Below are positions 159-24,774 of a stretch of 64,000 nt of DNA, piece by piece (positions within the stretch are counted from its first letter, which is position 1; every line of letters starts with the position of its first letter). The notes under the pieces are model-generated. The model was not told the DNA's origin and searched no databases. It was given only the letters and a program-made list of their open reading frames with translations. Both the position numbers and the translations under genes were made by a program. The DNA comes from Anaeramoeba ignava BMAN (taxonomy: Eukaryota; Protista; Anaeramoebae). The DNA lies in assembly GCA_028826165.1 (NCBI GenBank), contig JAPDFW010000073.1, positions 310,001 through 374,000 of the forward strand. Reading direction: 5' to 3'.

Positions 159-1768
159 AAATTAATTTAAAAATACAATTTAATATTTAACATAAAAATA
201 TAAAAAATAAGAATAGATTTAATTTAATATTTGATTTATAAATTAATTTAAAAATATAATTTAAATAATTAATTCAATTATTAAAATAATAATTTATTGT
301 TTTAGATTTAAATATTTTATTATTTAAATATTTAACATATAAATATAAAAAATAAGAATAGATTTAATTTAATATTTAATTTATAAATTAATTTAAAAAT
401 ATAATTTAATAATTAATTCAATTATTAAAATAATAATTTATTGTTTTAGATTTAAATATTTTATTATTTAAATATTAAACATATAAATATAAAAATAAGA
501 ATAGATTTAATTTAATATTTAATTTATAAATCAATTTAAAAATATAATTTATTATTTAAATTTATGTTTAAAATAATAATTTAATGTTTTAGATTTAAAT
601 ATTTTATTATTTAAATATTTAACATAAAAAAATAAAATACAAGAATAGATTTAATTTAATATTTAATTTATAAATTAATTTAAAAATATAATTTAATATT
701 TAATTTCATTATTAAAATAATAATTTAATGTTTTAGATTTAAATATTTTATTATTTAAATATTTAACATATAAATATAAAAATTGAAAATAAGTTTAATT
801 TAATATTTAATTTATAAATTAATTTAAAAATATAATTTAATATTTAATTCTATTATTAAAATAATAATTTATTGTTTTTAGATTTAAATATTTTATTATT
901 TAAATATTTAACATAAAAATATAAAAATAAGAATAGATTTAATTTAATATTTAATTTATAAATTAATTTAAAAATATAATTTAATATTTAATTTCATTAT
1001 TAAAATAATAATTTAATGTTTTAGATTTAAATATTTTATTATTTAAATATTTAACATATAAATATAAAAATTGAAAATAAGTTTAATTTAATATTTAATT
1101 TATAAAATAATTTAAAAATATAATTTAATATTTAATTTTATGTTTTAAAATAATAATTTAATGTTTTAAATTTAAATATTTTATTATTTAAATATTTAAC
1201 AAATAAATATAAAAATAAGAATAGATTTAATTTAATATTTAATTTATAAATTAATTTAAAAATATAATTTAATATTTAATTTTATTATTAAAATAATAAT
1301 TTATTGTTTTAGATTTAAATATTTTATTATTTAAATATTTAACATATAAATATAAAAAATAAGAATAGATTTAATTTAATATTTAATTTATAAATTAATT
1401 CAAAAATATAATTTAATATTTAATTTTATTATTAAAATAATAATTTAATGTTTTAGATTTAAATATTTTATTATTTAAAAATTTAACATATAAATATAAA
1501 AATAAGAATATATTTAATTTAATATTTAATTTATAAATTAATTTAAAAATTTAATTTAATATTTAATTTTATTATTAAAATAATAATTTAATGTTTTAGA
1601 TTTAAATATTTTCTTATTTAATTATTTAACATAAAAATATAAAAAATGAGAATAGATTTAATTTAATATTTAATTAATAAATTAATTTAAAAATATAATT
1701 TAATATTTAATTTTATGTTTAAAATAATAATTTATTGTTTTAGATTTAAATATTTTATTATTTAAAAA
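159..1768. repeat. Tandem repeat family A (~144-bp unit, ~11 copies)
   Basis: The landmark TTTAGATTTAAATATTTTATTATTTAAA recurs at ~301, 445, 588, 732, 878, 1020 and onward. The same unit occurs at 5584-6400 and 18295-20125. Confidence 0.95.
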
Positions 1769-2171
1769 TATTTTGAAAATTGATTTTTGAAATTAAAATT
1801 TTATCTTTTTTTTTGAATTAAATTGAATTAATATTAATTTGGAAATTTGTTTTTAAATTTAAATTTATTAATAATTTTTAAATTCAAAAAAAAAATAAAT
1901 TAAAAATTAAATTAAAATAATTTTCCTTTTTTTTTAATAAAAAAAATTAATAAAAAATAATAATAATTTATTAATAAATTAATTTAAAATAATAAATTAA
2001 AAAGAAAATTAAATTAATTATTAATTTAAATTTATTCTTATTTTTATATTTTTATTTATTTTCAAAATCCACTTTTTATTCATTTTTAAATTTTTTTTTC
2101 ATTTTTCCTTTTTTTAAAAACAAAAACAAAAACAAAAACAAAAAACAAAAACAAACAAACACAAAAACAAA
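1769..2171 (+). promoter_or_regulatory. Conserved upstream region of the BTB-TLDc gene, with a TTTTCATTTT initiator-like motif and (CAAAAA)n leader
   Basis: Near-identical to ~20124-20515 upstream of the second copy. Confidence 0.7.
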
Positions 2172-3869
2172 ATGGATAATAATAATAATAATAACCAAAT
2201 TGAAAATGCAAATCAAAATGAAAATGAAAATGAAATGAAAAATTTAGAAAAAAAAGTAACAAAAAATTTAATTAAAGATTATTCAAACCTTTTAAATGAA
2301 AATTCATTTAAAGATTTTTCAATTTTTGTTGAGAATAAATCAAATCCTTTTGAAATTAAAGTTCATAAATCAATTTTATCTTCAAGATCTCCTTTTTTTA
2401 ATGAATCATTAAGGCAAGAATCTCTTTCTATTTCTTTAAATCAATTTAATAAAAAAGAAATGGAATCAATTTTGAGTTATATTTATTATGGAAATATTTC
2501 TTTTGAGAATCAAGAAAATCTTATTCAATTATTGGAAATTTCAATTTATTTTAAATTAAATTTATTGAAAGAAATTATTCAAAAAAAAATTTTAAATTCA
2601 ATTAATTATTCAAATTTTTTCCAATTTTTATTCCAAAATCGAAATTTAAATTCAAATGAAATTGAAATAAAATGTTTTGAATTAATAAATCAAAATTTTT
2701 CCCAAATTCAAAATAATGAAAATTTATTCAATTTAACTAAAGAAGAAATTATCAAATTTATTCAATTTAAACAAGAAAAAAAAGAAATTTTTCAATTTGA
2801 TTTTTTTCAATTTTTAAATAATTGGATTGAAAAAAGAAATCAAAGATTAAAAGGAAAGAAAGAAAAAGAAAAAGAAAAAGAAAAAGGAATTGAAAAGAAA
2901 AGATTATTTCATTCTTTTTTTTCATTATTTGATAAAGATTCAATTTCAAAACAAGATTTTGATAAATTAAAACAATTTGATTTTTTTCCTAAATCTTTTT
3001 TAGTTGATATTCAAAACAAAGTTATTCAAGATAATCAAAAAGAAATTGAAGATAAAGAGAAAGAAATTGAAAAGAATCAAAAAGAAAATCAACAAATGAA
3101 AATTGAAATTGAAGAGAAATGGAAGAAAGAAGTTGAGAATAAAGAGAAAGAAAATCAACAAATGAAAATTGAAATTGAAGAGAAATGGAAGAAAGAAGTT
3201 GAAGAGAAAGAGAAGGAAAATCAACAAATGAAAATTGAAATTGAAGAGAAATGGAAGAAAGAAGTTGAGAAAATGAAACCTATTTTTGATGAAATTGAAG
3301 AAATGAAAAAACAATTTCAGAGTTTTTGGAATTCAGAAATTGTTCAAGATATTGAATATGTTAAGAAATTACAAGAATGGATAAATGATAATGATTTTTT
3401 TTCTAAAATGAAAAAAGGATTTTCAGCAAAAAGAGATGGGTTTAATTCTCAAAATTGGCATAAAGCAGTTGATGGGAAAGGAAAAACATTAGTTATTATC
3501 AAAACAAAACAAAATTTTATTTTTGGAGGTTTTACTCAAGTTGGATTTAAATCAGCAAATGGAGAATGGAGTAATGACTCAAATGCATTTATTTTTTCAT
3601 TAAGAAATGATAAAGGAGATAGAATACCTGCAAAGTTTACTTGTAAAGAACCTCAATATGCAATTTATTCTCATTTAAATATTGGTCCAAGGTTTGGTCA
3701 AGGAACTGATTTTCGAATAAATTCTAATTTACAACCTGGTTATTCAAATTTTGGTCATAGTTATATTCCACCTAATGGAATTACTTATGGAACAGATTCA
3801 GGTAAAAGTTATTTAGCTGGTTCTTATGATAAATGGGTTGTTGATGAAGTTGAATCTTATTTCATTTAA
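2172..3869 (+). CDS. BTB/POZ(-BACK-like)-coiled coil-TLDc domain protein, copy 1 (565 aa, intronless)
   Basis: BTB motif KDFSIFV...IKVHKSILSSRSPFF; EK-rich repetitive coiled coil; TLDc motifs FSAKRDGF...GKTLVIIKT..FIFGGFT...AFIFSL...GPRFG..DF...EVESY. Confidence 0.9.
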   Translation: MDNNNNNNQIENANQNENENEMKNLEKKVTKNLIKDYSNLLNENSFKDFSIFVENKSNPFEIKVHKSILSSRSPFFNESLRQESLSISLNQFNKKEMESILSYIYYGNISFENQENLIQLLEISIYFKLNLLKEIIQKKILNSINYSNFFQFLFQNRNLNSNEIEIKCFELINQNFSQIQNNENLFNLTKEEIIKFIQFKQEKKEIFQFDFFQFLNNWIEKRNQRLKGKKEKEKEKEKGIEKKRLFHSFFSLFDKDSISKQDFDKLKQFDFFPKSFLVDIQNKVIQDNQKEIEDKEKEIEKNQKENQQMKIEIEEKWKKEVENKEKENQQMKIEIEEKWKKEVEEKEKENQQMKIEIEEKWKKEVEKMKPIFDEIEEMKKQFQSFWNSEIVQDIEYVKKLQEWINDNDFFSKMKKGFSAKRDGFNSQNWHKAVDGKGKTLVIIKTKQNFIFGGFTQVGFKSANGEWSNDSNAFIFSLRNDKGDRIPAKFTCKEPQYAIYSHLNIGPRFGQGTDFRINSNLQPGYSNFGHSYIPPNGITYGTDSGKSYLAGSYDKWVVDEVESYFI

Positions 3870-4339
3870 AAAATTAATTAATAATAAGAAAATCAAACTT
3901 TTTTTTTTTAATTTTTTTTTTCAAAATTTAATTCAATTTTAATTTACTTTTAATCAAATTAATTTCTTTAAAATAATAAATAAGAAACGAATTTAATTTT
4001 AAATAATTTAATTTTAATTTAAAATATTTATTAAAAATTTAATTAATAAAAAATAATCCAAAAAAAAAAATAATAAATTTTAAAAAATTGAATATTTTTA
4101 ATATAATAAATAAAAATAAAAATTGAAAATAGAAATTAATAATAATTAAATTTAAATTCATTAATTAAAATATTAAAATAAAAAAAATCAAATAAAATTT
4201 ATTATTAATTAATATTTAAATATTAATAAATTATAATCAAAATCAAAAATAGAATAATTAGTAAATTATTTTTTTAGAAAGTTTATCTTATTCAATCATG
4301 TTAAATTCAATTTATTTAAAATTTTTAATTTTTAATTTT

Positions 4340-4840
4340 ATTTTTAATATATTTTATTATAATTAAAATTAGAATAATAAATAATTAAAAATATTAATAT
4401 AATAAATAAAAATATTATATCAAATTAAATTAAAATAAATTTAAATTAAATTATTATTAAATATTATTAAAATTAAATATTTATATTTATTAAAATATTT
4501 ATTCCACTTTTTAATATATTTTATTATAATTAAAATTGGAATAATAAATAATCAAAAATATTAATATAATAAATAAAAATATTATTTCAAATTAAATTAA
4601 AATAAATCTAAATTAAATTATTATTAAATATTATTAAAATTAAATATTTATTTTTATTAAAATATTTATTCCACTTTTTTTAATATATTTTATTATAATT
4701 AAAATTGGAATAATAAATAATCAAAAATATTAATTTAATAAATAAAAATATTATTTCAAATTAAATTAAAATAAATTTAAATTAAATTATTATTAAATAT
4801 TATTAAAATTAAATATTTATCTTTATTAAAATATTTCAAT
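4340..4840. repeat. Tandem repeat family B (~168-bp unit, ~3 copies)
   Basis: TTATTATAATTAAAATT at ~4353, 4521 and 4690; TATTCCACTTTTT at ~4500 and 4667. Confidence 0.85.
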
Positions 4841-4849
4841 TTTCTTCTC

Positions 4850-5270
4850 AATTTTATTAAATTATTGAGAATAATTTTATATTACTTTAAATAAAGAAAT
4901 ATTAATAAAATATATAAAATAAAATTAATTTTAAATTTAATTATTTAATATTCTTTATTCCATTTTTGAAATAAATTAATTAAAATATTTTATTTATTTT
5001 ATTAAATTATTGGGAATAATTTTATATTAATTTAAATAAAGAAATATTAATAAAATATATAAAATATAATTAATTTTAAATTTAATTATTTAATATTCTT
5101 TATTCCATTTTTGAAATAAATTAATTAAAATATTTTATTAATTTTATTTAAATATTGGGAATAATTTTATATTAATTTAAATAAAGAAATATTAATAAAA
5201 TATATAAAATAGAATTAATTTTAAATTTAATTATTTAATATTCTTTATTCCATTTTTGAAATAAATTAAT
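4850..5270. repeat. Tandem repeat family C (~145-bp unit, ~3 copies)
   Basis: TTCTTTATTCCATTTTTGAAATAAATTAAT at 4951, 5096 and 5241. Confidence 0.9.
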
Positions 5271-5583
5271 GAAAAAGATTTTATTATTGAAAGAAAAGAA
5301 AAACAATATAAATTTCCTAAATTAATATTAATAATGAGAAGTGAATTATATCGAGGAATGTTTTTATCTGTAACAGATGATACTTCTAATAAGTGAATTA
5401 AGTAATAAATCATTTCAAATATTTGAATATTGGATTTATTCAAATCAAATTAAAAATGAAATTCAAATTACACAAGAAATAATTGATGAAATTCAAATTG
5501 GAATTGATTATTTTCAATTAAATCAAACAAATCCAAATTTATTTGATTTATTAATTAACAAATTTAATAATCAAAATCAATAA
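5265..5583 (+). pseudogene. Orphan C-terminal BTB-domain gene fragment with an internal frameshifting deletion
   Basis: Reads INEKDFIIERKEKQYKFPKLILIMRSELYRGMFLSVTDDTSNK / ELSNKSFQIFEYWIYSN...DYFQLN...* and aligns with the last BTB domain of the ankyrin-BTB genes (ETKDFRII...VHKLILILRSELFKGMF...DYFQLN). There is no upstream gene body. Confidence 0.8.
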
Positions 5584-6400
5584 AAAACAAGAATAGGTTT
5601 AATTTAATATTTAATTTATAAATTAATTTAAAAATATAATTTAATATTTAATTTTATTATTAAAATAATAATTTAATGTTTTAAATTTAAATATTTTATT
5701 ATTTAAATATTTAACATATAAATATAAAAAATAGGAATAAGTTTAATTTAATATTTAATTTATAAATTAATTTAAAAATATAATTTAATATTTAATTTTA
5801 TTATTAAAATAATAATTTATTGTTTTAGATTTAAATATTTTATTATTTAAATATTTAACATAAAAATATAAAAATGAAAATAGATTTAATTTAATATTTA
5901 ATTTATAAATTAATTTAAAAATATAATTTAATATTCAATTTCATGTTTAAAATAATAATTTATTGTTTTTTAGATTTAAATATTTTATTATTTAAATATT
6001 TAACATATAAATATAAAAATGAAAATAGATTTAATTTAATATTTAATTTATAAATTAATTTAAAAATATAATTTAATATTTAATTTTATGTTTAAAATAA
6101 TAATTTATTGTTTTAAATTTAAATATTTTATTATTTAAATATTTAACATAAAAATATAAAAAATAAGAATAGATTTAATTTAATATTTAATATATAAATT
6201 AATTTAAAATTATAATTTAATATTTAATTTTATGTTTAAAATAATAATTTATTGTTTTAGATTTAAATATTTTATTATTTAAATATTTAACATAAAAATA
6301 TAAAAAATAAGAATAGATTTAATTTAATATTTAATTTATAAATTAATTTAAAAATATAATTTAATATTTAATTTCATGTTTAAAATAATAAATTAATGTT
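5584..6400. repeat. Tandem repeat family A (~144-bp unit, ~5.5 copies)
   Basis: Same unit and orientation as 159-1768. Confidence 0.95.
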
Positions 6401-6621
6401 TAATTAAAAATGAATTGTTGTTTGTTTTGGAAAAGAAAATGGAAGGAATTTGAGAAGGAAAAAAACCTTTTTTATTATTTTGTTATTTTGTTAATTTGTT
6501 TTGAAAAGAAATAAAAGGTTTTTTTTTTTTGGAAAGTAAAAAAAAAATTAAAAAAAGAAAAAGAAGTAAAAAAAAAAGAAGTAAAAAATGAAGTAAAAAA
6601 AAGTAAAAAGGAAGAAGAGAA

Positions 6622-7050
6622 TTATTTGAGCATCATATTTTTGAATTCATTAAATTCAAGACCACCAGATTTATCAGTATCATGTTCAGCAAGAATTTCA
6701 TCAACTTGTTGTTCAGTAATTGGTTCACCGAAATAATTAGCAATTTGCATCATTTCATTTTTATCAATTTTGCCATTTCCATCCAAATCAAAAGCTTCGA
6801 AAATCTTTTTCAAATCATCTTCAGTTGGAGCTGAATGATCTTCAACAATCATTTTCTTGAATTCAGAATAAGAAATAACTCCATCGTTGTTTTTATCAGC
6901 AAGTTTCATCATTAAATCAATTTCGAAATCTGAAATTGATTCCCCAATTTGTTTGCAGAAATTTGTGAATTCTTGCTTGTCAAGTGTTCCGTTTCCATCG
7001 GTATCAATCATATCAAATGCTGCTTTAATTTCTTGTTCGTTCATTGCCAT
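6622..7050 (-). CDS. Calmodulin-like four-EF-hand protein (142 aa)
   Basis: EF loops DTDGNGTLDKQE, DKNNDGVISYSE, DLDGNGKIDKNE and DTDKSGGLEFNE. The start was placed at MAMNEQ (7050) because the ORF-track extension is low complexity and contains the initiator-like motif. Confidence 0.9.
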   Translation of the reverse strand: MAMNEQEIKAAFDMIDTDGNGTLDKQEFTNFCKQIGESISDFEIDLMMKLADKNNDGVISYSEFKKMIVEDHSAPTEDDLKKIFEAFDLDGNGKIDKNEMMQIANYFGEPITEQQVDEILAEHDTDKSGGLEFNEFKNMMLK

Positions 7051-7269
7051 TGTTTTATTTTTCCAATTTGAAAAAAAATGAAAAAAAATTTTTTTTATTT
7101 TTTTTTTCTTTTTATTTTTCTTTTTTTTTTTAAATGCAGGCAATTTTTTTTTTAATTAAATTTTTCTTTTTATTTTTATTTTTATTTTTTAAACCAATTT
7201 TTACTAAAAATTATTATAAAATATTAAATAAAAATTAAAATTAATTTAAAATATTAATAAAAGGCAAAA

Positions 7270-8389: not shown

Positions 8390-8821
8390 TTATTTAAGTT
8401 CAGAAGTTCTTAACATCAACTCTTTAAACTCATCATATTCCAATCTACCAGTCATATTCTTATCATAAGCTTGAAAAAGAAGATCAATATCTTCATCAGT
8501 AACTTGACCAAAAAAATCACCAAGTCGAGTTAAATCTTCTCTTGCAATTGATCCTTTCCCATCTTTATCAAGAGTCTTAAAAGATTCAAGAATATCTTCT
8601 TCTTTAATAACTGAATCCTCTTCTACAAATAAAACTTTAATATCTTCATATCGATAACTATCATCATTTTTGATATTTTTTTCTTCTGAAAATATTTCTT
8701 TGATTTTTTCTTCTTTGATGTTTATAAGTTTGCAAAATTCAATAAATTCTTTTTTGTTAATAATATTATTTCGATCTAAATCTACTTTATCAAAAGCTTG
8801 TCGAATTTCTTTTTCTTCCAT
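8390..8821 (-). CDS. Divergent calmodulin-like EF-hand protein (143 aa)
   Basis: AFDKVDLDRNNIINKKEF, DKDGKGSIARED and DKNMTGRLEYDEF; colinear with the neighbouring EF-hand gene. Confidence 0.85.
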   Translation of the reverse strand: MEEKEIRQAFDKVDLDRNNIINKKEFIEFCKLINIKEEKIKEIFSEEKNIKNDDSYRYEDIKVLFVEEDSVIKEEDILESFKTLDKDGKGSIAREDLTRLGDFFGQVTDEDIDLLFQAYDKNMTGRLEYDEFKELMLRTSELK

Positions 8822-9707: not shown

Positions 9708-12700
9708 TTAATTTAAAATTAAATCAATTATTGAATTTGGATTTAATTGGAAATAATCTTTTAAATCATAAAATTCTTTGTTAATTTTAATTTCTTCTTC
9801 AAATTCATCATTATAAAGAAAGTAAATAAATTGATTAATTGTTTCAAATGATTTTCCTGAATAATCATGAACTTGATTTGATTGATCTTGAATATTTAAT
9901 TCAAACATTCCTTTAAACAATTCACTTCTTAATATTAATATTAATTTATGAACTTTAATTTCTTTTTCTTCACAAATAATTCTAAAATCTTTTGTTTCAT
10001 TTTCTTGATATAATTTTGATAAATCTTTTATTATTCCTTTTCTTCCTTTTTTTTCATTAACCCAATTTAAATCGAATCCAATTTCTTCAAAAAAACTTAT
10101 TACTCTATTTTCATTTTCATTTTCATTTTCAGAAATTTGTTTCAATTCTTCTGCTCGTGGATTAGTTTGATCAGATTCAAATGGATAATCATCTGGGAAC
10201 ATATCAAAATCTGGATATTCATATGTGTAAGTATATCCTGATTCATTTTGAATAATGAATTGATTACGATATTGATCAAAATCAGGAAATCCAGTATAAA
10301 GAAAATTTAGAAGAATTTCAACTTCTTCTTTTGATTTTTGAGAACAAATATCAATAAATTTTTGTAAAATAGATTCATTATTATCAAATCTTGTTAATAA
10401 AATTGGTTTATGAACTTGAAATTTGGAAGAATCATTTGATTGAATTTGTAAATCTTTTAAGTTATTAGTTGATTTTAATAAATTATTCATATCTTCATTA
10501 ATTGAATAAACTTGAGAAAAAAGTGTCAAAAATTGTTGAGAAATTTCAAGATGTTCTAAATCAAAAATTTTCGCATCATTCATCAACAATATTATAATGA
10601 ATTTGCTATTCGCATTTTGAATTGATGTTGAAAGTAAAGATTTATTCTCATTTGAAACAGAATTCACATCAGCACCTTTTTCAATCATAAATTTAACAAT
10701 TTCAAATGATTTTAAATAATTATTGCAAATATAATAAAGAGGTGTTTCATTTCATTTATTTTTGGAATTAATATCAGCTCCTTTTTCAACAAGATATTTG
10801 ATAATCTCAAGAGAATTTTTGTATTTGCAAATATAATGGAGAGGTGTTTCATTTCCATTATTTTTGGAATTAATATCAGCTCCTTTTTCAATAAGATATT
10901 TGATAATTTCAAACGAAGAGTTCTGACAAGCATAATGCAAAGGTGTTTCATTTCTATCATTTTTGGAATTAATATCAATTCCTTTTTCCAGAAGAAATTT
11001 GATAATTTCAAATGGATTTTTATATTTACAAGCAAAATGCAAAATAGAGTCGTTTTTGTAATCAAATTTTATATTAACATCTGCACCTTTATTAATAAGA
11101 AAAGAGAAAACTTCAATTGTGTCTTTAATTCCAAAGCTAAATCTTAGCAAAGCAAAGCATAAAGCTGTTTCATTTCGGCTATTTTTGGAATTAATATCAG
11201 CTCCTTTTTCAATAAGATATTTGATAATTTCAAACGAAGAGTTTTGACAAGCATAATGCAAAGGTATTTGATTTATATTTGTTTTTGGATTAATATCAGC
11301 TCCTTTTTCAACAAGAAATTTGATAATATCAAATATTGATGGTTCGTCTTTTTGGGATTGATTAAAACAAATAAAATATAACGGTGTTTCTTGGAAAATT
11401 GTTTCTGCATTAACATCTGATCCTCTTTCAACAAGATATCTTATAATTTCAAGTGAAATGAGTCTTGTACAAGCATAATGCAAAGGAAGATATGAATGAT
11501 AATTCACAATATTAATATCTGCAAGATTTTCAACAAGGCATTTGATAATTTTAAATAGAGTCTCTTTCGGACAAGAAAAATCATTTTGACAAATTATATG
11601 CAAAGCTGTGTTTTTCATATTTCTTATTTGTGCATTAATATCTGCTCTTTTAGAAACAAGAAGGTTAATAAGTCCCACAGTATATTCGTTTGGATAAGAA
11701 CAAATCACCAAAAGTGGTGTTTTATCTTCAAAATTTTTAGCATTAATATCAGCTCCTTTTGCAATAAGAAATTTAATAACTTCAACACATGTTTGAATTT
11801 TTTCACAATTAAATAAAGAAAAACATGCAGTATGCAAAGGTATCTCAACAGAACTACTTTTGGCATTAATATCTGCTCCTTTTTCAACAAGAAATTGCAC
11901 AATTTTCGTTGAATTTGCGTTTATGTTTTCACAAGCCAAATGCAATGATGTTTTCTTATCACCCTTTTTTTGTGCTTTAATATTTGCTCCTTTTTCAACA
12001 AGTAATTTAATAACTTCAAATGAATTACTTCCTTTATGTTGACAAGCAAAAAGCAAAGGAGTCATGTGATCCTGAGCTATTTCAACATCCAATTCAGCTC
12101 CCTTTTCAACAAGAAGTTTTGCTAATTCAAATGAATTTGGATGATCACATTTGCAAATAAAATGTAAAGGAGTAAGTTGATATTCTGTTTGTGCTTTAAT
12201 ATTTGCTCCTTTTTCAATAAGAAATTTAATCACTTCAAGTGAATTTTGATGTTCACAAGCATAATGTAAAGGTGTTATAAAATATTTATTCTTAGAATTG
12301 ATATCTGCTCCTTTCTCAATCAAAAATTTGATAATTTCAAATGAATTTTTATAATGACAAGCAAAATGTAAAGGTGTTCCTTCCCAATTAGTTCGAGCAT
12401 TCACATTTGCTCCTTTTTCAACAAGAAATTTAATCACTTCAAACGAATTTTGATATTCACAAGCATAATGCAAAGGAGTTAATTCATAAGTTGTAAAAGC
12501 ATTAACATCAGCTCCTTTTTCAATAAGAAATTTAATCACTTCAAGTGAGTTTTGATATTCACAAGCAAAATCCAAAGGAGTCTGATTTTGATTTGCTTTT
12601 GAATTAATATCTATTCCTTGATCAACAAAAAATTTGATAATTTCAAGTGCATTTGGGTTTGTATTCTGAGAAGCATAATGCAAAGATGTTTGTTTTTGAG

Positions 12701-13547
12701 CTGTTTCGGAATAAATATTTGCTCCTTTTTCAACAAGAAATTTAATCACTTCGAACGAATTTTGATATTTGCAAGCATAATGCAAAGGAACCTCTTGTAA
12801 ATCTGTTTGTGAATTAATATCTATTCCTTGATCAACCAAAAATTTGATAATTTCAAGTGCATTTGGGTTTGTATTGCGACAAGCATAATGAAAAGCTTTT
12901 TCTGTTGTGATCTTTTTTGGATTAATATCAGAAGCTTTTTCAATAAGAAATTTAATAACATCAACTGAATTTTGATATTGAAAAGCATAACGAAAAGGTG
13001 TTTGCATAAAATTTCCTTTTTCAAAAATATCAGCTCCTTTTTCAACAAGAAATTTGATAACATCAACTGAATTTTGATATTGACATGCATAATGTAAAGG
13101 TGTCTCATTTTCATTTGTTTTTGAATTAACATCAACACCCTTTTCAATAAGTAATTTAATAACTTCAAATGAATTTTCATATTTGCAAGCAAAATGTAAA
13201 GGTGTTTCTTTGTTATTTGTTTTAGAATTAATATCTGCTCCTTTTTCAACAAGAAATTTAATCAATTCAAATGAATTAGAATGCTTATATATACAAGCAA
13301 AATGTAAAGGTGTTTCTTCTAAATACAAGGCTTTAATATTTAATTTAGCTTTTTTTTCAACAAGAAATTTGATAATTTCAAGTGAATTTTCTTGCTGATA
13401 TTTGCAGACAAGATGCAAAAGTGTTTTTCTTTTCTTTGTTTTTGAATTAATATCAACACCTTTCTCAATCAAAGATTTAAACATTTCAAATAAGTTGGAA
13501 TTTTTCTTTTTACATAAATCAATTATTAATTTTTGATTTTTCTCCAT
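9708..13547 (-). CDS. Long ankyrin-repeat protein with C-terminal tandem BTB domains (copy B), interrupted by one in-frame TGA at 10754-10752
   Basis: More than 20 TPLHxAC...IIKFLxEKGADIN repeats. ORFs 10752..13547 and 9708..10688 share one frame (NSKNK*NETPLYYIC). BTB motifs FQVHKPILLTR and IKVHKLILILRSELF. Confidence 0.85.
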
Positions 13548-13613
13548 TTTATTTAATTTTTTTTTATTTTTAAATGAAAGAAAAAAAATGAAAAAAAATT
13601 TTTATTTAATTAA

Positions 13614-16600
13614 TTAATTTAAAAATAAATCAATTATTGAATTTGGATTTAATTGGAAATAATCTTTTAAATCATAAAATTCTTTGTTAATTTTAATTTC
13701 TTCTTCAAATTCATCATGATAAAGAAAGTAAATAAATTGATTAATTGTTTCAAATGATTTTCCTGAATAATCATGAACTTGATTTGATTGATCTTGAATA
13801 TTTAATTCAAACATTCCTTTAAACAATTCACTTCTTAATATTAATATTAATTTATGAACTTTAATTTCTTTTTCTTCACAAATAATTCTAAAATCTTTTG
13901 TTTCATTTTCTTGATATAATTTTGATAAATCTTTTATTATTCCTTTTCTTCCTTTTTTTTCATTAATCCAATTTAAATCAAATCCAATTTCTTCAAAAAA
14001 TTCTATAAGAATCATTTCTCTCATTTCAATTTTATTTTCTGATTCATTTTGAATAATGAATTGATTACGATATTGATCAAAATCAGGAAATCCAGTATAA
14101 AGAAAATTTAGAAGAATTTCAACTTCTTCTTTTGATTTTTGAGAACAAATATCAATAAATTTTTGTAAAATTGATTCATTATTATCAAATCTTGTTAATA
14201 AAATTGGTTTATGAACTTGAAATTTGGAAGAATCATTTGATTGAATTTGTAAATCTGAAAAATTATTAGTTGATTTTAATAAATTATTCATATCTTCATT
14301 AATTGAATAAACTTGACAAAAAATTGTTAAAAATTGTTGAGAAATTATTATTTGATTTCCCAAATCCAAAAAATTTACATCATTCATCAACAATATTTGA
14401 ATCCCTTTTTCGTTCTCATTTTGAATTGATATTGAAAGTGGTGATTCTCCATAACCATTTTGAAAATTTATATCAGCACCATTTTCAATAAGCAATTTAA
14501 TCACTCCAAATGAATTTTTATATCTGCAAGCAAAATGTAAAGGTGTTATGCTATCTTTGTTTTTGTAATCCACATCAACACCTTTTTCAATAAGAAATTT
14601 AACAATTTCAACTGAATTTTGAGATTGACAAACAATATGTAAAAGGAGTTTCATTTTCATTTGTTTTTGAATTAATATCAGCTCCTTTTTCAACAAGTAA
14701 TTTAATAACTTCAAATGAATTTTCATATTTGCAAGCATAATGCAAAGGTGTCTCATTTCTATCTGTTTTTGAATTAATATCTGCTCCTTTTTCAACAAGA
14801 AATTTAATCACTTCAAATGAATTTTTATATTCACAAGCAAAATGTAAAGGTGTTCTATTATTTTTGGCTTGATAATTAACATCAGCACCTTTTTCAACAA
14901 GAAATTTAATAATTTCAAATGATTTCTTGTATTTACAAGCAATATGTAAAGGCTTCTCTCTTGTTTTTGTTTTTCTATTAACATTAGATCCTTTTTCAAT
15001 AAGAAATTTAATAATTTCAAGTGAATCTTTATATTGACAAACAATATGTAAAGGAGTCTCATTTTCATTTGTTTTTGAATTAATATCTGCTCCTTTTTCA
15101 ACAAGTAATTTAATAACTTCAAATGAATTTTCATATTTGCAAGCAAAATGTAAAGGTGTCTCATTTCTATCTGTTTTTGAATTAATATCAGCTCCTTTTT
15201 CAACAAGAAATTTAATCACTTCAAATGAATTTTGATATCTGCAAGCAAAATGCAAAGGTGTTTCTTTGTTATTTGTTTTAGAATTAATATCTGCTCCTTT
15301 TTCAACAAGAAATTTAATCAATTCAAATGATTTAGAATGCTTATATATACAAGCAAAATGTAAAGGTGTTTCTTCTAAATACAAGGCTTTAATATTTAAT
15401 TTAGCTTTTTTTTCAACAAGAAATTTGATAATTTCAAGTGAATTTTCTTGCTGATATTTGCAGACATGATGCAAAGGACTTGCTTCACTGTTTTTTCTAG
15501 GATTAATTTTGGCTTTTTTTAATACTAGAAATTTGATAATTTCAAATGTATTTTGATGTTTAAATTGGCAAGCAATATCTAAAGGTGTTTCTTTCTTAAT
15601 CTTAGTTCTGACATTAACATCTGCTCCTTTTTCAATTAAATATTTAATAACTTCAATTGCATTTTTATTACAAACAAGATGTAAAGGTGTTTCATTTTGA
15701 ATTGTTTTATTTTTGACATTGGCTTTTTTTGAAACTAATAATTGGATAATTTCTAGCAAATTATTTTCTTGATATTTACAAACTAAATCTAAAGGAGTTT
15801 CTTTTTTCTTTGTTCTGACATTAACATCAGCTCCTTTTTCAATTAAATATTTAATAATTTCAATTGCATTTTTATTTTGATTTTGATTTTGATTTTTACA
15901 AATAAAATGCAAAGGAGTTTCATCTAAATCATTTTTGACATTAACATCTGCTCCTTTTTCAATTAAATATTTAATAATTTCAATTACATTTTTATTTTGA
16001 CTTTTGCAAGTATAATGCAAAATTGTTTCATATTTCAGATTTTTGATATTGACATCAATCCCATTTTCAATAAAGTATTTGATAACATCAATTACATTTT
16101 CATTTAGATTTTCATTTTGACAAATAATTTGTAAAGCTGTTTCATTTAAATTATTTGTAGCTTTAATATCTGTTCCATTTTGGATTAAATACTTAATAAT
16201 TTCAATTAATTTTCCATTTTGTTTTTGGCTTTCATTTTGACAAAGAAAATGTAAAGCTGTTTCATTTGAAGTAGTTCTGGCATCAAAATCTGCTCCTTTT
16301 TCAATTAAATATTTAATAATTTCAATTAAATTTTCATTCTGAAATTGGCAAACAAAATGTAAAGGCGTTTGTTTAAAATTAGCTCTGGCATTGATATCTG
16401 CTCCATTTTCAATTAAATATTTAATAATTTCAATTAAATTTTCATTTTGATTTTGACAAGCAAAATGTAAAGATGTTCGAGATAAATTAGCTTTGTCATT
16501 GATATCTGCTCCTTTTTCAACTAAATATTTAATAATTTCAATTACTTTTTCATTTTGACTTTGGCAAACAAAATGTAAAACGGATTCTTTTTTAATATTT

Positions 16601-16816
16601 TTGGCATTGATATCTGCTCCATTTTCAATTAAATATTTAATAATTTCAATTGCATTTTTCATTTTGTGATTGAGAAGCAAAATGTAAAGCTGTTTCATTA
16701 TATATTGTATGTGAATTAATATCTGCACCTTTTGAAACCAAAAATTTTATAATTTCAATTGAATTTTCTTTTTGACAAGCAATTAATAATTTTTCATTTT
16801 TTTGAGATTGTTTCAT
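13614..16816 (-). CDS. Long ankyrin-repeat protein with C-terminal tandem BTB domains (copy A); two +1 homopolymer frameshifts (~16655, ~14643)
   Basis: ATG at 16816 (MKQSQKNEKLLIACQKENSIEIIKFL). Ankyrin repeats continue across both frameshifts, and the BTB C-terminus is nearly identical to copy B. Confidence 0.85.
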
Positions 16817-17048: not shown

Positions 17049-18181
17049 ATGGATAGTGATGATATTGCAGCATTAGTTATTGATAATGGTTCAGGAATGT
17101 GTAAAGCAGGAATTGCAGGTGAAGATGCACCAAGAGCAGTTTTTCCATCAATAGTTGGAAGACCAAGATATTTAGGAGTTATGGTTGGAATGGGACAAAA
17201 AGATTCATATGTTGGAGATGAAGCTCAATCCAAAAGAGGGATGTTAACATTGAAATATCCAATAGAACATGGAATAATAACAAATTGGGATGATATGGAA
17301 AAAATCTGGCATCATACTTTTTATAATGAATTGAGAGTAACACCTGAAGAACATCCAGTCTTATTAACTGAAGCTCCATTGAATCCAAAGGCAAACAGAG
17401 AGAAAATGACTCAAATCATGTTTGAAACATTCAACTCTCCAGCAATGTATGTTGCTATTCAAGCAGTTTTATCACTTTATGCCTCAGGAAGAACAACAGG
17501 AATGGTTGTTGATAGTGGAGATGGTGTTTCTCATACTGTTCCAATTTATGAAGGATATGCTTTGCCTCATGCTATCATGAGAATTGATTTGGCTGGAAGA
17601 GATTTAACTGATTACTTAACAAAGATCTTGACTGAAAGAGGATATTCATTTGTTACAACTGCTGAAAGAGAAATTGTCAGAGATATCAAAGAAAAATTGA
17701 GTTATGTTGCTTTGGATTTTGATCAAGAAATGGAAATTGCAGCTGAATCTTCTACTATTGAAAAGAATTATGAATTACCTGATGGTCAAGTTATTACAAT
17801 TGGAAATGAAAGATTTAGATGTCCAGAAGTCTTATTTCAACCTTCTTTAATTGGAATGGAACAACCAGGTGTTCATGAAACAACTTATAATTCAATTATG
17901 AAATGTGATGTTGATATTAGAAGAGATCTTTATGGAAATGTTGTTTTATCTGGAGGTTCTTCAATGTTTCCAGGAATTGCTGATAGACTTCACAAAAGGA
18001 AATTACTCAATTATCTCCTCCTGCAATGAAAGTTAAGATTATTGCTTCTCCTGAAAGAAAATATTCTGTTTGGATTGGAGGATCAATTTTAGCTTCTCTT
18101 TCCACTTTTTCAAATATGTGGATTTCGAATGAAGAATATGAAGAATCTGGACCTTCTATTGTTCACAGAAAATGTTTTTAA
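17049..18181 (+). CDS. ACT: Actin (intronless; net +2 nt frameshift at ~17995, probably a sequencing error)
   Basis: [32 protein letters not shown]; after the shift [34 protein letters not shown]...[10 protein letters not shown]. Confidence 0.97.
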
Positions 18182-18294: not shown

Positions 18295-20125
18295 ATTTTT
18301 AATTTAATATTTAATTTATAAATTAATTTAAAAATATAATTTAATAATTAATTTCATGTTTAAAATAATAATTTATTGTTTTAGATTTAAATATTTTAAT
18401 TATTTAAATATTTAACATATAAATATAAAAAATGAAAATAGATTTAATTTAATATTTAATTTATAAATTAATTTAAAAATATAATTTAATATTTAATTTT
18501 ATTATTAAAATAATAATTTATTGTTTTAGATTTAAATATTTTATTATTTAAAAATTTAACATATAAATATAAAAATGGAAATAAGTTTAATTTAATATTT
18601 ATAAATTAATTTAAAAATATAATTTAAAAATTAATTTTATGTTTAAAATAATAATTTATTGTTTTAGATTTAAATATTTTATTATTTAAATATTTAACAT
18701 AAAAATATAAAAATAAGAATAGGTTTAATTTAATATTTAATTTATAAAATTAATTTAAAAATATAATTTAATATTTAATTTTATTATTAAAATAATAATT
18801 TTATGTTTTAAATTTAAATATTTTATTATTTAAATATTTAACATATAAATATAAAAATGAAAAAAAATAGATTTAATTTAAAATAAATTAATTTATAATT
18901 TAATATTTAATTTTATTATTAAAATAATAATTTAATGTTTTAGATTTAAATATTTTATTATTTAAATATTTAACATATAAATATAAAAAATAAGAATAGA
19001 TTTAATTTAATATTTAATTTATAAATTAATTTTAAAATATAATTTAATATTTAATTTTATTATTAAAATAATAATTTATTGTTTTAGATTTAAATATTTT
19101 ATTATTTAAATATATTTAACATATAAATATAAAAATGAAAATAGATTTAATTTAATATTTAATTTATAAATTAATTCAAAAATATAATTTAATTAATAAT
19201 TTTATGTTTAAAATAATAATTTAATGTTTTATATTTAAATATTTTATTATTTAAATATTTAACATATAAATATAAAAATAAGAATAGATTTAATTTAATA
19301 TTTAATTTATAAATCAATTTAAAAATATAATTTAATATTTAATTTTATTATTGAAATAATAATTTAATGTTTTAGATTTAAATATTTTTATTATTTAAAT
19401 ATTTAAAACATATAAATATAAAAAAATAAGAATAGGTTTAATTTAATATTTAATTTATAAATTAATTTAAAAATATAATTTAATATTTAATTTTATGTTT
19501 AAAATAATAATTTAATGTTTTAGATTTAAATATTTTATTATTTAAATATTTAACATAAAAATATAAAAATGAAAATAGATTTAATTTAATATTTAATTTA
19601 TAAATTAATTTAAAAATATAATTTAATATTTAATTTTATTATTAAAATAATAATTTAATGTTTTAGATTTAAATATTTTATTATTTAAATATTTAACATA
19701 TAAATATAAAAAACAAGAATAGATTTAATTTAATATTTAATTTATAAATCAATTTAAAAATATAATTTAATATTTAATTTTATGTTTAAAATAATAATTT
19801 AATGTTTTAGATTTAAATATTTTATTATTTAAAAATATTTAACATAAAAATATAAAAATAAGAATAGATTTAATTTAATATTTAATTTATAAATTAATTT
19901 AAAAATATAATTTAATATTTAATTTTATTATTAAAATAATAATTTAATGTTTTAGATTTAAATATTTTATTATTTAAATATTTAACATATAAATATAAAA
20001 ATAAGAATAGATTTAATTTAATATTTAATTTATAAATTAATTCAAAAATATAATTTAATATTTAATTCCATTATTAAAATAATAATTTATTGTTTTAGAT
20101 TTAAATATTTTATTATTTAAAAATA
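18295..20125. repeat. Tandem repeat family A (~144-bp unit, ~12.5 copies)
   Basis: Same unit. It ends in the same junction (TTTAAAAATATTTTGAAAATTGATTTTTG) as the array at 1768. Confidence 0.95.
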
Positions 20126-20515: not shown

Positions 20516-22246
20516 ATGGATAATAATAATAATAATAACCAAATTCAAAATGCAAATGAAAATGAAAATGAAAATGAAATGAAAAATTTAGAAAAAAAAG
20601 TAACAAAAAATTTAATTAAAGATTATTCAAACCTTTTAAATGGAAATTCATTTAAAGATTTTTCAATTTTTGTTGAGAATAAATCAAATCCTTTTGAAAT
20701 TAAAGTTCATAAATCAATTTTATCTTCAAGATCTCCTTTTTTTAATGAATCATTAAGGCAAGAATCTCTTTCTATTTCTTTAAATCAATTTAATAAAAAA
20801 GAAATGGAATCAATTTTGAGTTATATTTATTATGGAAATATTTCTTTTGAGAATCAAGAAAATCTTATTCAATTATTGGAAATTTCAATTTATTTTAAAT
20901 TAAATTTATTGAAAGAAATTATTCAAAAAAAAATTTCAAATTCAATTAATTATTCAAATTTTTTCCAATTTTTATTCCAAAATCGAAATTTAAATTCAAA
21001 TGAAATTGAAATAAAATGTTTTGAATTAATAAATCAAAATTTTTCCCAAATTCAAAATAATGAGAATTTATTCAATTTAACTAAAGAAGAAATTATCAAA
21101 TTTATTCAATTTAAACAAGAAAAAAAAGAAATTTTTCAATTTGATTTTTTTCAATTTTTAAATAATTGGATTGAAAAAAGAAATCAAAGATTAAAAGAAA
21201 GAAAAAAAAAGAAAAAGAAAAAGGAATTGAAAAGAAAAGATTATTTCATTCTTTTTTTTCATTATTTGATAAAGATTCAATTTCAAAACAAGATTTTGAT
21301 AAATTAAAACAATTTGATTTTTTTCCTAAATCTTTTTTAGTTGATATTCAAAACAAAGTTATTCAAGACAATCAAAAAGAAATTGAAAACAAAGAAAAGG
21401 AAATTGAAGAGAAATGGAAGAAAGAAGTTGAAGATAAAAACAAAGAAATTGAAGATAAAAACAAAGAAATTGAAGATAAAAACAAAGAAATTGAAGATAA
21501 AAACAAAGAAATTGAGAATAAAGAGAAAGAGAATCAACAAATGAAAATTGAAATTGAAGAGAAATGGAAGAAAGAAGTTGAATGGAAGAAAGAAGGAAAA
21601 TCAACAAATGGAGAAGATTAAAGTGAATTTTGACTTGATTGTATTCCAAAAGAATTTTCCTCAATTTTCAGATTCAGAAATTATTAAAGATATTGAATAT
21701 GTTAAGAAATTACAAGAATGGATAAATGATAATGATTTTTTTTCTAAAATGAAAAAAGGATTTTCAGCAAAAAGAGATGGATTTTCTGGTGAAAATTGGC
21801 AAAAAGCAGTTGATGATAAAGGAAAAACATTAGTTATTATCAAAACAAAAGATAATTTTATTTTTGGAGGTTTTACTCAAGTTGGATGGACAATGAATAC
21901 ATCAAAATGGAGTTATAATGGAGGAAGTTGGGGAAGAATGAAAGATGAAAATGCATTTATTTTTTCATTAAGAAATGATAAAGGAGATAGAAATCCTGCA
22001 AAGTTTACAATTCAAAAAGGAAAAGAAGATTTAGCTATTCAATCACAAACAGTTTGTGGACCATATTTTGGATCAAACTCTCCAGATTTTTATTTATGTT
22101 CTAATTTACAACCTGGTTATTCAAATTTTGGTTCTCGATATAATCTACCTAATGGAATTACTTTTGAATCAAATGAAGCTTATAGTTATTTAGCTGGTTC
22201 TCATGATAAATGGGTTGTTGATGAACTTGAAACTTATTTCATTTAA
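20516..22246 (+). CDS. BTB-coiled coil-TLDc protein, copy 2 (frameshifts at ~21200 and ~21585 in A/G-rich runs)
   Basis: The N-terminal ~225 aa are almost identical to copy 1. The TLDc domain is in ORF 21548..22246. Confidence 0.85.
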
Positions 22247-22339: not shown

Positions 22340-22853
22340 CCAAATAAAATTATTATTTAAAATTATTAAAATTAAATAAATATTTTTATTAAAATATTTC
22401 AATTTAAATTTTGATTAAATTTTTTAATAATCAAAATAAAATAATTTGTAAATAAAAAGTATTAGTTTAATCAAATAAAATTATAATTGAATTTAAAATA
22501 AAATTAAATCAAATAAAATAATTATTTAAAATTATTAAAATTGAATAAATATTTTTATTAAATTATTTCAATTTAAATTTTGATTTAATTTTTTAATAAT
22601 CAAAATAAAATAATTTGTAAATAAAAAGTATTAGTTTAATCAAATAAAATTATAATTGAATTTAAAATAAAATTAAATCAAATAAAATTATTACTTAAAA
22701 TTATTAAAATTAAATAAATATTTTTATTAAATTATTTCAATTTAAATTTTGATTTAAATTTTTTAATAATCAAAATAAAATAATTTGTAAATAAAAAGTA
22801 TTAGTTTAATCAAATAAAATTATAATTGAATTTAAAATAAAATTAAATCAAAT
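22340..22853. repeat. Tandem repeat D (~169-bp unit, 3 copies), a diverged relative of family B
   Basis: GTATTAGTTTAATCAAAT at ~22459, 22628 and 22798. It shares ATTATTAAAATTAAAT...TTTATTAAAATATTTCAATTT with repeat B. Confidence 0.85.
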
Positions 22854-22968
22854 CAAAGCGAATTATTTTTTTGAATCCAAAAAAGAAAAAAATTTTTTTA
22901 CATTTTTTCATTTTTTTCATTTTTTCATTTTTTCATTTTTTAAAAATTTTTAAATTCAAAACAAAAAA

Positions 22969-24774
22969 ATGGCATGTTCATCAATATTCATTTTTGATTC
23001 AAAAGGAAAAGCATTAATCACACGAAATTACCGGAACGATACATTTTTAGGGCAAGCCAAACGGTACATTTCGCATTTACTTGAGCAAGCAGAAGAAAAC
23101 GAGAAGTGTCCAATTAGTGAAGAAAAAGACGGAGTAACCTTTATATACGTTGAGCACAATTCACTGTATTTTGTTGCAGCCACGCGATACAACACAAACG
23201 CAGCAATTGTTGTTGAGTTTCTTTACAGCATTATCAAAGTATTTCAGGATTATTTCAAAGAAGTTGAAGAAGAAAGTATTTCTGATAATTTTGTTTTGAT
23301 TCACCAACTTTTGGATGAAATGATGGATTTCGGTTATCCTCAATTTTCAGAGGCAAAGGTCCTTCAGGAATATATTGTTTCTGAAACTCATAAGCTTGTT
23401 ACTTCTGAAAATACTAGTGTTCCTATTGCTGTAACTGGTCAAGTTTCTTGGAGAAAAGAAGGTATTTCGCATAAAAAAAATCAGGTTTATATTGATGTTA
23501 TTGAGAAAATTAAAATGACTATTTCTGAACATAATCGTGTTTTAAAGTAATTATTATTTCAAATCAAAATAAAAATTAAAATTCATTTATAAAATCAAAA
23601 TTCATTTTAAAATTAAAATTAAAATTAAAATTAAAATTAAAATTCAAATTAAAATTAAAATTAAAATTAAAATTAAAATTAAAATTAAAATTAAAATTAA
23701 AATTAAAATTAAAATCAAAATCAAAAACAAAATCAAAATTAAAATTAAAATTTAAAATTAAAATTAAATTTAAAATTAAAATTAAAATTAAAATTAAAAT
23801 TAAAATTAAAATTAAAATTAAAATTAAAATTAAAATTAAAATTAAAATCAAAATTAAAATCAAAATTAAAATTAAAATTAAAATTTAAAATTAAAATTAA
23901 AATTAAAATTAAAATTAAAATTAAAATTAAAATCAAAATTAAAATTAAAATTAAAATTAAAATCAAAATTCATTTTAGTTCTGAAATTATTGGTTCAATT
24001 ATGTTAAATACAGAACTTACTGGAACTCCTCATTGTCATTTAGGATTAAATGATAAAATTAGACTTGAAAAGAAAAGCAGTTGTAAATTAAAATTAAAAA
24101 TTAAATTAAAAAAAATTAAATTAAATAAAAATTAAATTAAAAAATTCAAAAAAATTAAATTGAAAAATTCAAAAGCAAAAAAACTTAAAAGTTCTCAAAT
24201 GGATGATATAAAATTCCATCAATGTGTCCGACTTTCCAAATTTGATAGCGATCGGTCAATAACATTTATTCCACCAGATGGACCATTTGAATTATTATCA
24301 TATCGAGTATCACGAATAACAAAACCATTATTCACAATTGAAAGTATGATTGAAAGACATCCTGGATCAAGAATAGAATATCTTCTTAAAGTGAAATCTT
24401 TATTTCGCTCAAACGCAACAGCAACAAATGTTCATGTTTTTATACCAGTAAATGAAAACGCAGATTCTCCAAAAATTAAATCAAGTTCTGGAAAATGTAA
24501 ATATGAACCACAAAGTAATCAAATGAATTGGTGGTTCAAAAATTTCGAAGGAGGAAAAGAACACACAATGAGAGCTCATTTTGGATTGTCTTCTTTCGAT
24601 CGAAAAGAAGCTGATAAACGTCCTATTACTATTTCTTTTGAAATTCCTTATGAAACCGTTACTGGAATTAGAGTTAAATTTTTAAAGATTCAAGAGAAAT
24701 CTGGTTATACAGCATTACCATGGATTAGATATCTAGTAATTGGAGAACCAGGTGCTTATGAAATAAGAATTTGA
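22969..24774 (+). CDS. AP1M: AP-1 adaptor complex medium (mu) subunit (exons 22969-23546, 23979-24082, 24176-24774)
   Basis: DSKGKALITRNYR, EESISDNFVLIHQLLDEMMDFGYPQ, VSWRKEGI, LGLNDK, DDIKFHQCVRL, FIPPDG, KSGYTALPWIRY. Splicing restores the frame. Confidence 0.92.

Follow-up and report, generated by a model that had tools for sequence, protein, structure and literature searches.

Hypervariable TLDc domains joined to a near-constant BTB half: a candidate germline-encoded recognition repertoire in Anaeramoeba ignava

Anaeramoeba ignava, an anaerobic amoeba among the metamonad protists, carries a large family of dispersed, intronless genes for proteins composed of a BTB domain, a coiled coil and a TLDc domain, whose N-terminal half is nearly constant and whose TLDc domain varies strongly at a small set of sites. 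Positive selection on about 22 TLDc codons is well supported, and we are highly confident that such selection and gene conversion have together shaped the family. With somewhat better than even confidence, we read these genes as an immune-type, germline-encoded repertoire of Cullin-3 adaptors in which the TLDc domain provides varied recognition. Two members, here called genes A and B, are present in the 64,000-nucleotide stretch of DNA that was analysed (the window). This stretch is part of a 42.8-Mb, 147-contig assembly of a genome with an A+T content of 80.65%, for which Nanopore R9 reads were followed by Racon, Nanopolish and Pilon (PMC11550330).

Gene A (2172..3869, + strand) is an intact, intronless open reading frame of 565 amino acids, and an identical protein is on record (P0001). 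Its BTB domain (aa 39-142; 2286..2597, +; PF00651, E 2.7e-13, 50.5 bits) is near-constant in the family and is followed by helices resembling a 3-box/BACK region (2598..2741, +), through which phmmer matches to KBTBD4, KLHL11 and SPOP extend. A coiled-coil linker (3042..3268, +), built from 66-bp and shorter repeats according to TRF and differing in length when the linkers of the copies are compared, leads to the TLDc domain (aa 387-565; 3330..3869, +; PF07534, E 1e-19). The Pfam match of the latter covers residues 389-534 and scores 71.5 bits against a cut-off of 24.5. Gene B (20516..22246, +), recognized from its open reading frames, Pfam matches and alignment, is a paralog with the same layout and a different 3' flank; as assembled it contains two compensating frameshifts, which take it out of frame at about 21194-21210 and back at about 21580-21590. 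The preliminary description had counted some four differences in the first 225 residues of the two proteins, and there are exactly four (positions 11, 15, 43 and 141); the identity it reported for TLDc framework DNA holds as a 94-nt run (3346-3439 = 21687-21780), and all five pairs of diverged segments that it quoted are found in the alignment. Its further statement that discrete segments are replaced, with indels, is correct with regard to short loop indels; the segments themselves resolve, in an alignment of 70 copies, into single hypervariable codons that alternate with invariant ones.

Searches of the A. ignava genome with the TLDc domains of genes A and B, covering the best 150 of 666 and the best 150 of 660 candidates, respectively, together identified no fewer than 170 distinct loci, distributed over more than 60 contigs; with the N-terminal half as query, about 110 matches reached 90% identity or more. 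The existence of a large family with a constant N-terminal half, as initially proposed, is borne out by these counts and by a median difference of only about 2% in the BTB domain. Seventy loci were fetched, giving 74 distinct copies with those of the window included; they are the copies closest to gene A and hence a biased sample. The copy L065, which did not align in register, was excluded from the later statistics on variation and selection; these refer to 70 copies. All close homologues of the family are from A. ignava, indicating a large lineage-specific expansion. Small tandem clusters, in which young cassettes are mixed with more diverged TLDc genes, were observed at two of the loci (L044:1-10000 and L034:1-5801), and one of these diverged genes has a canonical BTB-BACK N-terminal half. 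The diverged genes of these clusters are possible donors in gene conversion.

Each gene is part of a cassette of about 5 kb that is inserted between unrelated genes, with a shared order of elements: a 144-bp array, the 5' flank, the gene, the 3' flank, one to six 167-bp repeats, one to five 145-bp repeats and usually a fragment of a BTB-type gene. Upstream of gene A, TRF detects an AT-rich tandem array of eleven 144-bp units (178..1766), and the same array lies upstream of most fetched copies with enough upstream DNA (40 of 75 rows). It is followed by a conserved proximal 5' flank (1790..2171, +), likely comprising promoter and 5' UTR, that is present in 58 of 75 rows with a median pairwise difference of 2.4-2.7%; within it, in both cassettes, a 46-nt segment (2010-2055) repeats part of the 144-bp unit in inverted orientation with 93% identity. 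The proximal 3' flank (3870..4330, +; 61 of 75 rows) is near-invariant. Further downstream come three 167-bp and three 145-bp repeats (4341..5286; TRF), whose numbers differ when copies are compared, and the 3' fragment of another BTB-type gene (5288..5580, +), assigned to its family by eye and interrupted by a stop in the cassette A copy; such a fragment trails the 145-bp repeats in 14 of the 19 loci with enough DNA. A second 144-bp array of six units (5547..6401) follows. In cassette B, an array of the 144-bp type with about 13 units (18298..20121) lies upstream and three 169-bp repeats (22341..22857) lie downstream, both detected by TRF. Neither window cassette showed long terminal inverted repeats, its ends not being linked by arms of high identity, and a foldback or TIR transposon was consequently rejected as an explanation for these two cassettes.

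Genes A and B have unrelated neighbours. An EF-hand (calmodulin-like) open reading frame (6622-7143, -) is separated by AT-rich repeats from a second short EF-hand-like stretch recognized by eye (about 8390-8820, -), and ankyrin-repeat genes with C-terminal BTB domains stand in tandem, as several open reading frames, at 9708-16728 (-), so that a second adaptor-like family lies beside the TLDc cassettes. Directly upstream of cassette B is an actin-like gene (17049-18180, +), whose open reading frame ends at 18029 and whose sequence seems to run on in another frame to about 18180. Two hexamer tandem arrays of about 70 units each (23561-23970 and 25373-25814) are also present, the former between two open reading frames of an adaptor-complex mu subunit gene.

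The copies differ very unevenly along the unit. Median pairwise differences among the 70 copies are 2.4% in the 5' flank, 1.7% in the BTB domain, 3.7% in the N-terminal half of the TLDc domain, 15.6% in its C-terminal half and 0.66% in the 3' flank; in the C-terminal TLDc half no copy has a neighbour closer than 7.8%, and in the BTB domain the nearest may be only 0.17% away. Of the 179 TLDc positions, 71 do not vary at all, while 22 sites exceed 1.75 bits of entropy (gene A residues 461-463, 466, 491, 493-496, 499, 501, 503, 504, 507, 510, 512, 515, 517, 524, 529, 540 and 553), and a separate set of 65 paralogous proteins has the same site profile (Spearman rho 0.88). Hypervariable loop 1 (aa 461-468; 3552..3575, +) stands out by its entropy and occurs in a short and a long length class; gene B has the long form, which is common among more distant paralogs and may be a grafted segment. 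A second variable loop (aa 491-496) is continued by the strand sites Y499, H501, N503 and I504 (3642..3683, +; 1.9-3.1 bits; sites 495, 499, 501 and 504 also identified by codon model M2a). The strand and turn sites R507, Q510, T512, R515 and N517 (3690..3722, +; M2a), which alternate with near-invariant G, P, F, G and D, have entropies of 3.0-3.5 bits, with 11-16 residues each in the alignment that still included L065, and entropy and M2a mark further variable sites at Y524, H529, G540 and D553/K554 (3741..3833, +). Twelve sites accommodate at least ten different residues, with a maximum of 15. Tyrosine (28%) and asparagine (18%) predominate at the variable sites, followed by Gly, His, Arg, Ser, Trp and Gln; antibody binding surfaces, too, are typically rich in tyrosine. 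Each of the 70 copies has its own combination of residues at the 13 core sites, and the entropy summed over sites is about 54 bits. Mosaic variation, partly in the same loops, is also seen in close TLDc paralogs of metagenomic origin (P0208, P0210, P0211, P0215, P0216, P0222 and P0231-P0234), and in one A. ignava TLDc protein (P0184) loop 1 has grown into a long Gln/Asn/Pro/Phe repeat.

AlphaFold models the TLDc domain with a pLDDT of 92 as the alpha/beta sandwich typical for this domain, and Foldseek matches the model to NCOA7, OXR2, mEAK-7, Skywalker and Oxr1p with TM scores of about 0.7 (E 6e-8 to NCOA7 and OXR2), although sequence identity to canonical TLDc proteins is a mere 14-18%. A single-sequence search of the PDB gave only chance matches to Fab fragments, which are not meaningful. 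Strand order and the alignment with Skywalker equate the model strands at domain residues 112-115, 121-122, 128-130 and 137-138 with beta6-beta9 of NCOA7, strands that make up the second sheet along with the beginning of beta10 (PMC8329711). Homology places the variable sites on this second beta-sheet and its adjoining loops. Since sites 499, 501, 507, 515, 517, 524 and 553/554 lie on or beside the beta6-beta9 strands and alternate with conserved residues, the predicted secondary structure and the published topology suggest that the variable sites may form one exposed, outward-looking face.

Binding of the V-ATPase is the established function of TLDc domains (PMC9263379, PMC8804929), and in mEAK-7 residues P316/Q317 contact its subunit A (PMC9263379). 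In the alignment these two residues coincide with the hypervariable, length-variable loop 1, and mEAK-7 G276/H277 coincide with G423/F424, of which the glycine is conserved and the histidine is replaced by phenylalanine. The mEAK-7 contacts Y341, T354, Y367 and K384 would, as we presume from sequence spacing, also fall within variable loops. Judged by these alignments, the surface with which TLDc domains normally engage their ligand has likely been turned into the variable face.

Selection on the variable sites was evaluated with codon models, implemented in purpose-written code with F3x4 composition correction and fixed relative branch lengths, in which M2a was preferred over M1a with a 2dL of 769 and assigned an omega of 7.1 to 10% of the sites and of 0.04 to 62%. 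Divergence of the aligned paralogs is consequently far from uniform, a rapidly changing class of codons being embedded in a purified framework. As recombination can produce false 2dL values of up to 353, a tree-based test is unsafe on its own, and tree-free contrasts were therefore added. At variable sites that had been defined on the separate set of 65 paralogs, piN is 0.49, compared with a piS of 0.058 in the conserved codons interleaved with them and of 0.037 in the BTB domain; piN/piS is 0.18 in the conserved TLDc framework codons and about 0.5 in the BTB half (aa 23-220; piN 0.018, piS 0.037; 25 intact copies). At the core variable codons, 40% of first and second positions depart from the consensus, versus 5.6% at adjacent fourfold sites. 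Five neutral simulations with recombination, in which independent genealogies were drawn every 3-10 codons, yielded 2dL values of 13-353, omega values of 1.8-3.1 and at most six to seven residues per site, with no site reaching ten. Model comparison, piN/piS contrasts and residue counts beyond those of the neutral simulations thus agree on site-specific positive selection, one of the two processes suggested beforehand; the exact size of its effect is not fixed, the simulations being slightly less diverse than the data (0.07-0.09 vs 0.098 observed).

The second process suggested beforehand, segmental gene conversion, is upheld as conversion and revised as to scale. Computed on shared polymorphisms with the most variable codons excluded, r2 falls from 0.21 at 3-10 nt to 0.12 at 10-30 nt, 0.03 at 30-100 nt and about 0.02 beyond, a decay that none of 1000 permutations matched in strength; linkage is lost within about 30 nt, and the tracts are short, in the range of tens of bases, and not long segments. 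Distances between the parts of the unit are only weakly correlated (-0.11 for BTB vs C-terminal TLDc half). All four gametes occur in 41 of 45 pairs of multi-base markers with identical codons, and of the four exceptional pairs two overlap in position and none departs from independence; the spread of site combinations among copies equals that obtained by column permutation. This free assortment of variants among copies that reside on different contigs implies frequent short-tract ectopic gene conversion. The replacement of blocks from diverged donors was rejected as the main source of the diversity because the interleaved synonymous sites are nearly invariant.

Two explanations that would detach the diversity from selection on ordinary mutation have to be weighed here. 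A targeted mutator, either DGR-like reverse transcription or a deaminase, could be invoked on the grounds that most variable codons are of NNT type and centre on Asn and Tyr, that arginine is encoded by CGT in 30 of 57 instances at variable sites and by AGA in 140 of 141 in the framework, and that fourfold sites are about six times more variable in the variable zone than in the N-terminal half (5.6% vs 0.9%). Synonymous adenines adjoining variable codons are fixed (Pro506 CCA and Gly536 GGA, each in 69 of 70 copies), however, first positions with T or G as consensus vary as much as those with A, and first and second positions change far more often than adjacent fourfold sites; retention of NNT is the outcome of nonsynonymous point changes in a genome with 80% AT. 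DGR activity, which lacks support because of these fixed adenines, was rejected for want of adenine-specific mutagenesis. The window open reading frames that were scanned also revealed neither a reverse transcriptase nor a template repeat of such an element. The mild local rise in synonymous variation fits hitchhiking in short tracts; it leaves a little room for a local mutator, and we regard a mutator as the source of the diversity as quite improbable. An artefact of assembly, be it uncollapsed haplotypes, polishing chimeras or sequencing error, we consider hardly credible. The combination of Nanopore R9 reads and Pilon (PMC11550330) and the recurrent -1 or -2 homopolymer indels in the BTB half speak for it, and polishing may somewhat inflate BTB identity. 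Against it stand TLDc differences that preserve the frame and fall mainly at codon positions 1 and 2, nearest neighbours at least 7.8% apart in the C-terminal half, and copies spread over more than 60 contigs, with unrelated neighbours in the case of the window copies; in addition, the positions that vary in 37 TLDc relatives from outside Anaeramoeba, taken from other datasets, overlap with those of the family (rho 0.54), a similarity that surface exposure alone would partly produce.

Errors of this type do bear on how many genes appear to be intact. An unbroken frame from BTB to TLDc is found in about 25-28 of the 74 copies as assembled, and about two thirds of the copies, including copy B, are frameshifted. 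Many of the breaks are losses of one or two nucleotides in A or T runs, recur at the same few positions of the BTB half and cluster in single copies, a profile expected where short reads lack unique placement, and many frameshifts are therefore probably nanopore errors. The TLDc parts are without internal stops in copies that were chosen for good matches. Among the matches listed, the only transcriptome-derived one from A. ignava is a distant TLDc protein (41%), and low expression per copy, or transcripts that were not assembled, is weakly suggested.

The N-terminal half matches Cullin-3 adaptors best; phmmer aligns it with KBTBD4, KEAP1, KLHL11 and SPOP over the BTB domain and the helices that follow, reaching the start of the BACK domain of KBTBD4. 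Pfam BACK has no match in copy A and does match older paralogs, and a single-sequence model of this half (pLDDT 57) is helical after the BTB domain with low confidence. In the commonest allele, the alpha3-beta4 loop, which is the site of the Cullin-3 phi-x-E motif, is four to five residues shorter than in KBTBD4; a Glu aligns with that of KBTBD4, and the hydrophobic position is an Arg unless the register shifts. The motif loop appears degenerate in the young clade, and one older paralog keeps the canonical form. Binding of Cullin-3 by the N-terminal half is plausible.

We suggest that this young, genome-wide family of adaptors would act as a germline-encoded recognition repertoire, in which a near-constant BTB/BACK-like handle is connected via a length-variable coiled coil to a TLDc domain that would serve as binding scaffold. 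Point changes at about 22 codons are positively selected on a purified framework, and the resulting variants are reshuffled among the dispersed copies in the manner expected of short-tract gene conversion. The ligands may be foreign or fast-changing proteins, derived from a symbiont, prey, a virus or a mobile element, and bound targets would be handed to a Cullin-3 ligase and ubiquitinated. Ectopic recombination and the dispersal of the cassettes may be seeded by the minisatellites and near-identical sequences on either side of the genes. A far-reaching extension, in which programmed micro-conversion among the repeat-bracketed cassettes creates new TLDc faces within a clonal culture as an active, anticipatory system of intracellular receptors, and in which the TLDc subtype is a widespread and unrecognised immune scaffold of eukaryotes, appears doubtful to us.

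Other functions can be envisioned for a variable protein of this build, the most serious of them, though still unlikely, being that of a receptor that is not a Cullin-3 adaptor. Its BTB domain would only dimerise and, with the coiled coil, build up a multivalent sensor or decoy of the TRIM type, which would trap its targets or signal about them. The seemingly degenerate phi-x-E loop of the young clade, set beside the canonical motif in an older paralog, would suit this proposal, as would the occurrence, in other eukaryotes, of the TLDc subtype in fusions with B-box, Ig, EGF and FN3 domains; it is at odds with the purifying selection on the BTB domain and its 3-box/BACK-like helices (piN/piS about 0.5), for which Cullin-3 adaptors are the best matches. 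It is less probable, in our view an outside chance, that the family regulates or guards the cell's own V-ATPase, for instance in the acidification of symbiosomes or phagosomes, and varies to escape microbial antagonists, or that it protects from oxidative stress. The established ligand of TLDc domains (PMC9263379, PMC8804929), the conservation of the glycine aligned to mEAK-7 G276 and the TLD expansions of symbiont-bearing ciliates (PMC11834939) are in its favour, but an interface that serves a conserved self ligand should itself be conserved, yet the segment matching mEAK-7 P316/Q317 is hypervariable and differs in length, and a role in dosage does not predict an omega of 7. Slightly more remote still is a selfish cassette bracketed by repeats, the copies of which would compete with, or have to recognise, each other, so that the variable face would confer self-specificity. 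Dispersed families of this kind are exemplified by the wtf drive genes of fission yeast, and the 5-kb unit with its conserved arrays and carried gene fragment between unrelated genes, together with conversion and changes in repeat length that are typical of such families, fits the picture; yet no transposase or reverse transcriptase was detected among the window open reading frames scanned, the window cassettes are devoid of long terminal inverted repeats, and neither a second co-varying gene nor a toxic domain was seen in the unit.

The design of an adaptor repertoire is known from other organisms. In nematodes, a conserved F-box is combined with a positively selected substrate-binding domain (PMC12062965), and expansions of F-box and MATH-BTB adaptors are described from nematodes and plants (Thomas 2006 as cited in PMC12062965 and PMC1866355). 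They resemble the A. ignava family in being large and unstable, with a purified cullin-binding module, a positively selected substrate-binding domain and a proposed role in pathogen defence. The A. ignava family differs in its binding domain, TLDc, in its metamonad host, in the dispersal of its copies, in a handle that is about 98% identical, in linkage equilibrium beyond about 30 nt, in the minisatellite-bracketed cassette and in a Cullin-3 motif that is seemingly degenerate. TRIM5-type RING/B-box/coiled-coil/SPRY sensors and the highly variable NLRs of plants likewise combine a constant effector handle, a spacer and a positively selected, high-entropy sheet or loop surface; the A. ignava family shares this arrangement of handle, spacer and variable surface, but its domains are unrelated, and RING, NB-ARC and LRR domains are absent. 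Mosaic alleles formed via short conversion tracts, upstream repeats and conserved 3' ends are known from trypanosome VSG genes, Borrelia vlsE and chicken Ig pseudogenes and recur in the A. ignava family, which, unlike these systems, has no evident signal peptide or membrane anchor and shows no sign of an expression site, a silent archive or programmed conversion.

With OXR1/Oxr1p, NCOA7, mEAK-7 and TBC1D24/Skywalker the family shares the fold, and its variable loop aligns with V-ATPase contacts of mEAK-7; canonical TLDc proteins, however, are encoded by few genes and have conserved interfaces, as opposed to hundreds of genes and a hypervariable sheet in A. ignava. One of the canonical proteins, NCOA7-AS, is interferon-induced and antiviral. 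In cnidarians, rotifers, arthropods and amoebozoans, the TLDc subtype found here is combined with BTB, BACK, B-box, Ig, EGF and FN3 domains, and these BTB-BACK-TLDc and B-box/Ig/EGF/FN3-TLDc proteins have architectures similar to those of the A. ignava family. The TLD expansions of Paramecium bursaria and Tetrahymena utriculariae have been read as protection from oxidative stress (PMC11834939), and for other TLDc/TLD expansions, those of symbiont-bearing protists included, we found no report of hypervariability or conversion. Nor did a literature search, conducted largely outside subscription journals, produce a paper in which TLDc figures as a hypervariable binding domain, or one on an Anaeramoeba TLDc/BTB family; the family is neither discussed in the genome paper (PMC11550330) nor named in the searched portion of its supplements. 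The use of TLDc as the variable binding domain of an otherwise known design is apparently new.

How single-celled eukaryotes distinguish the microbes and viruses within them, or keep these in check, is barely known. In a host whose bacterial symbiosome is structured, the family offers a candidate that is defined and open to testing: a small soluble domain with about 20 mapped variable positions. It also provides an alternative reading for the TLDc expansions of symbiont-bearing ciliates and other lineages, which have so far been attributed to protection from oxidative stress, and it shows with unusual clarity how paralogs spread over dozens of contigs can act as one freely recombining population.
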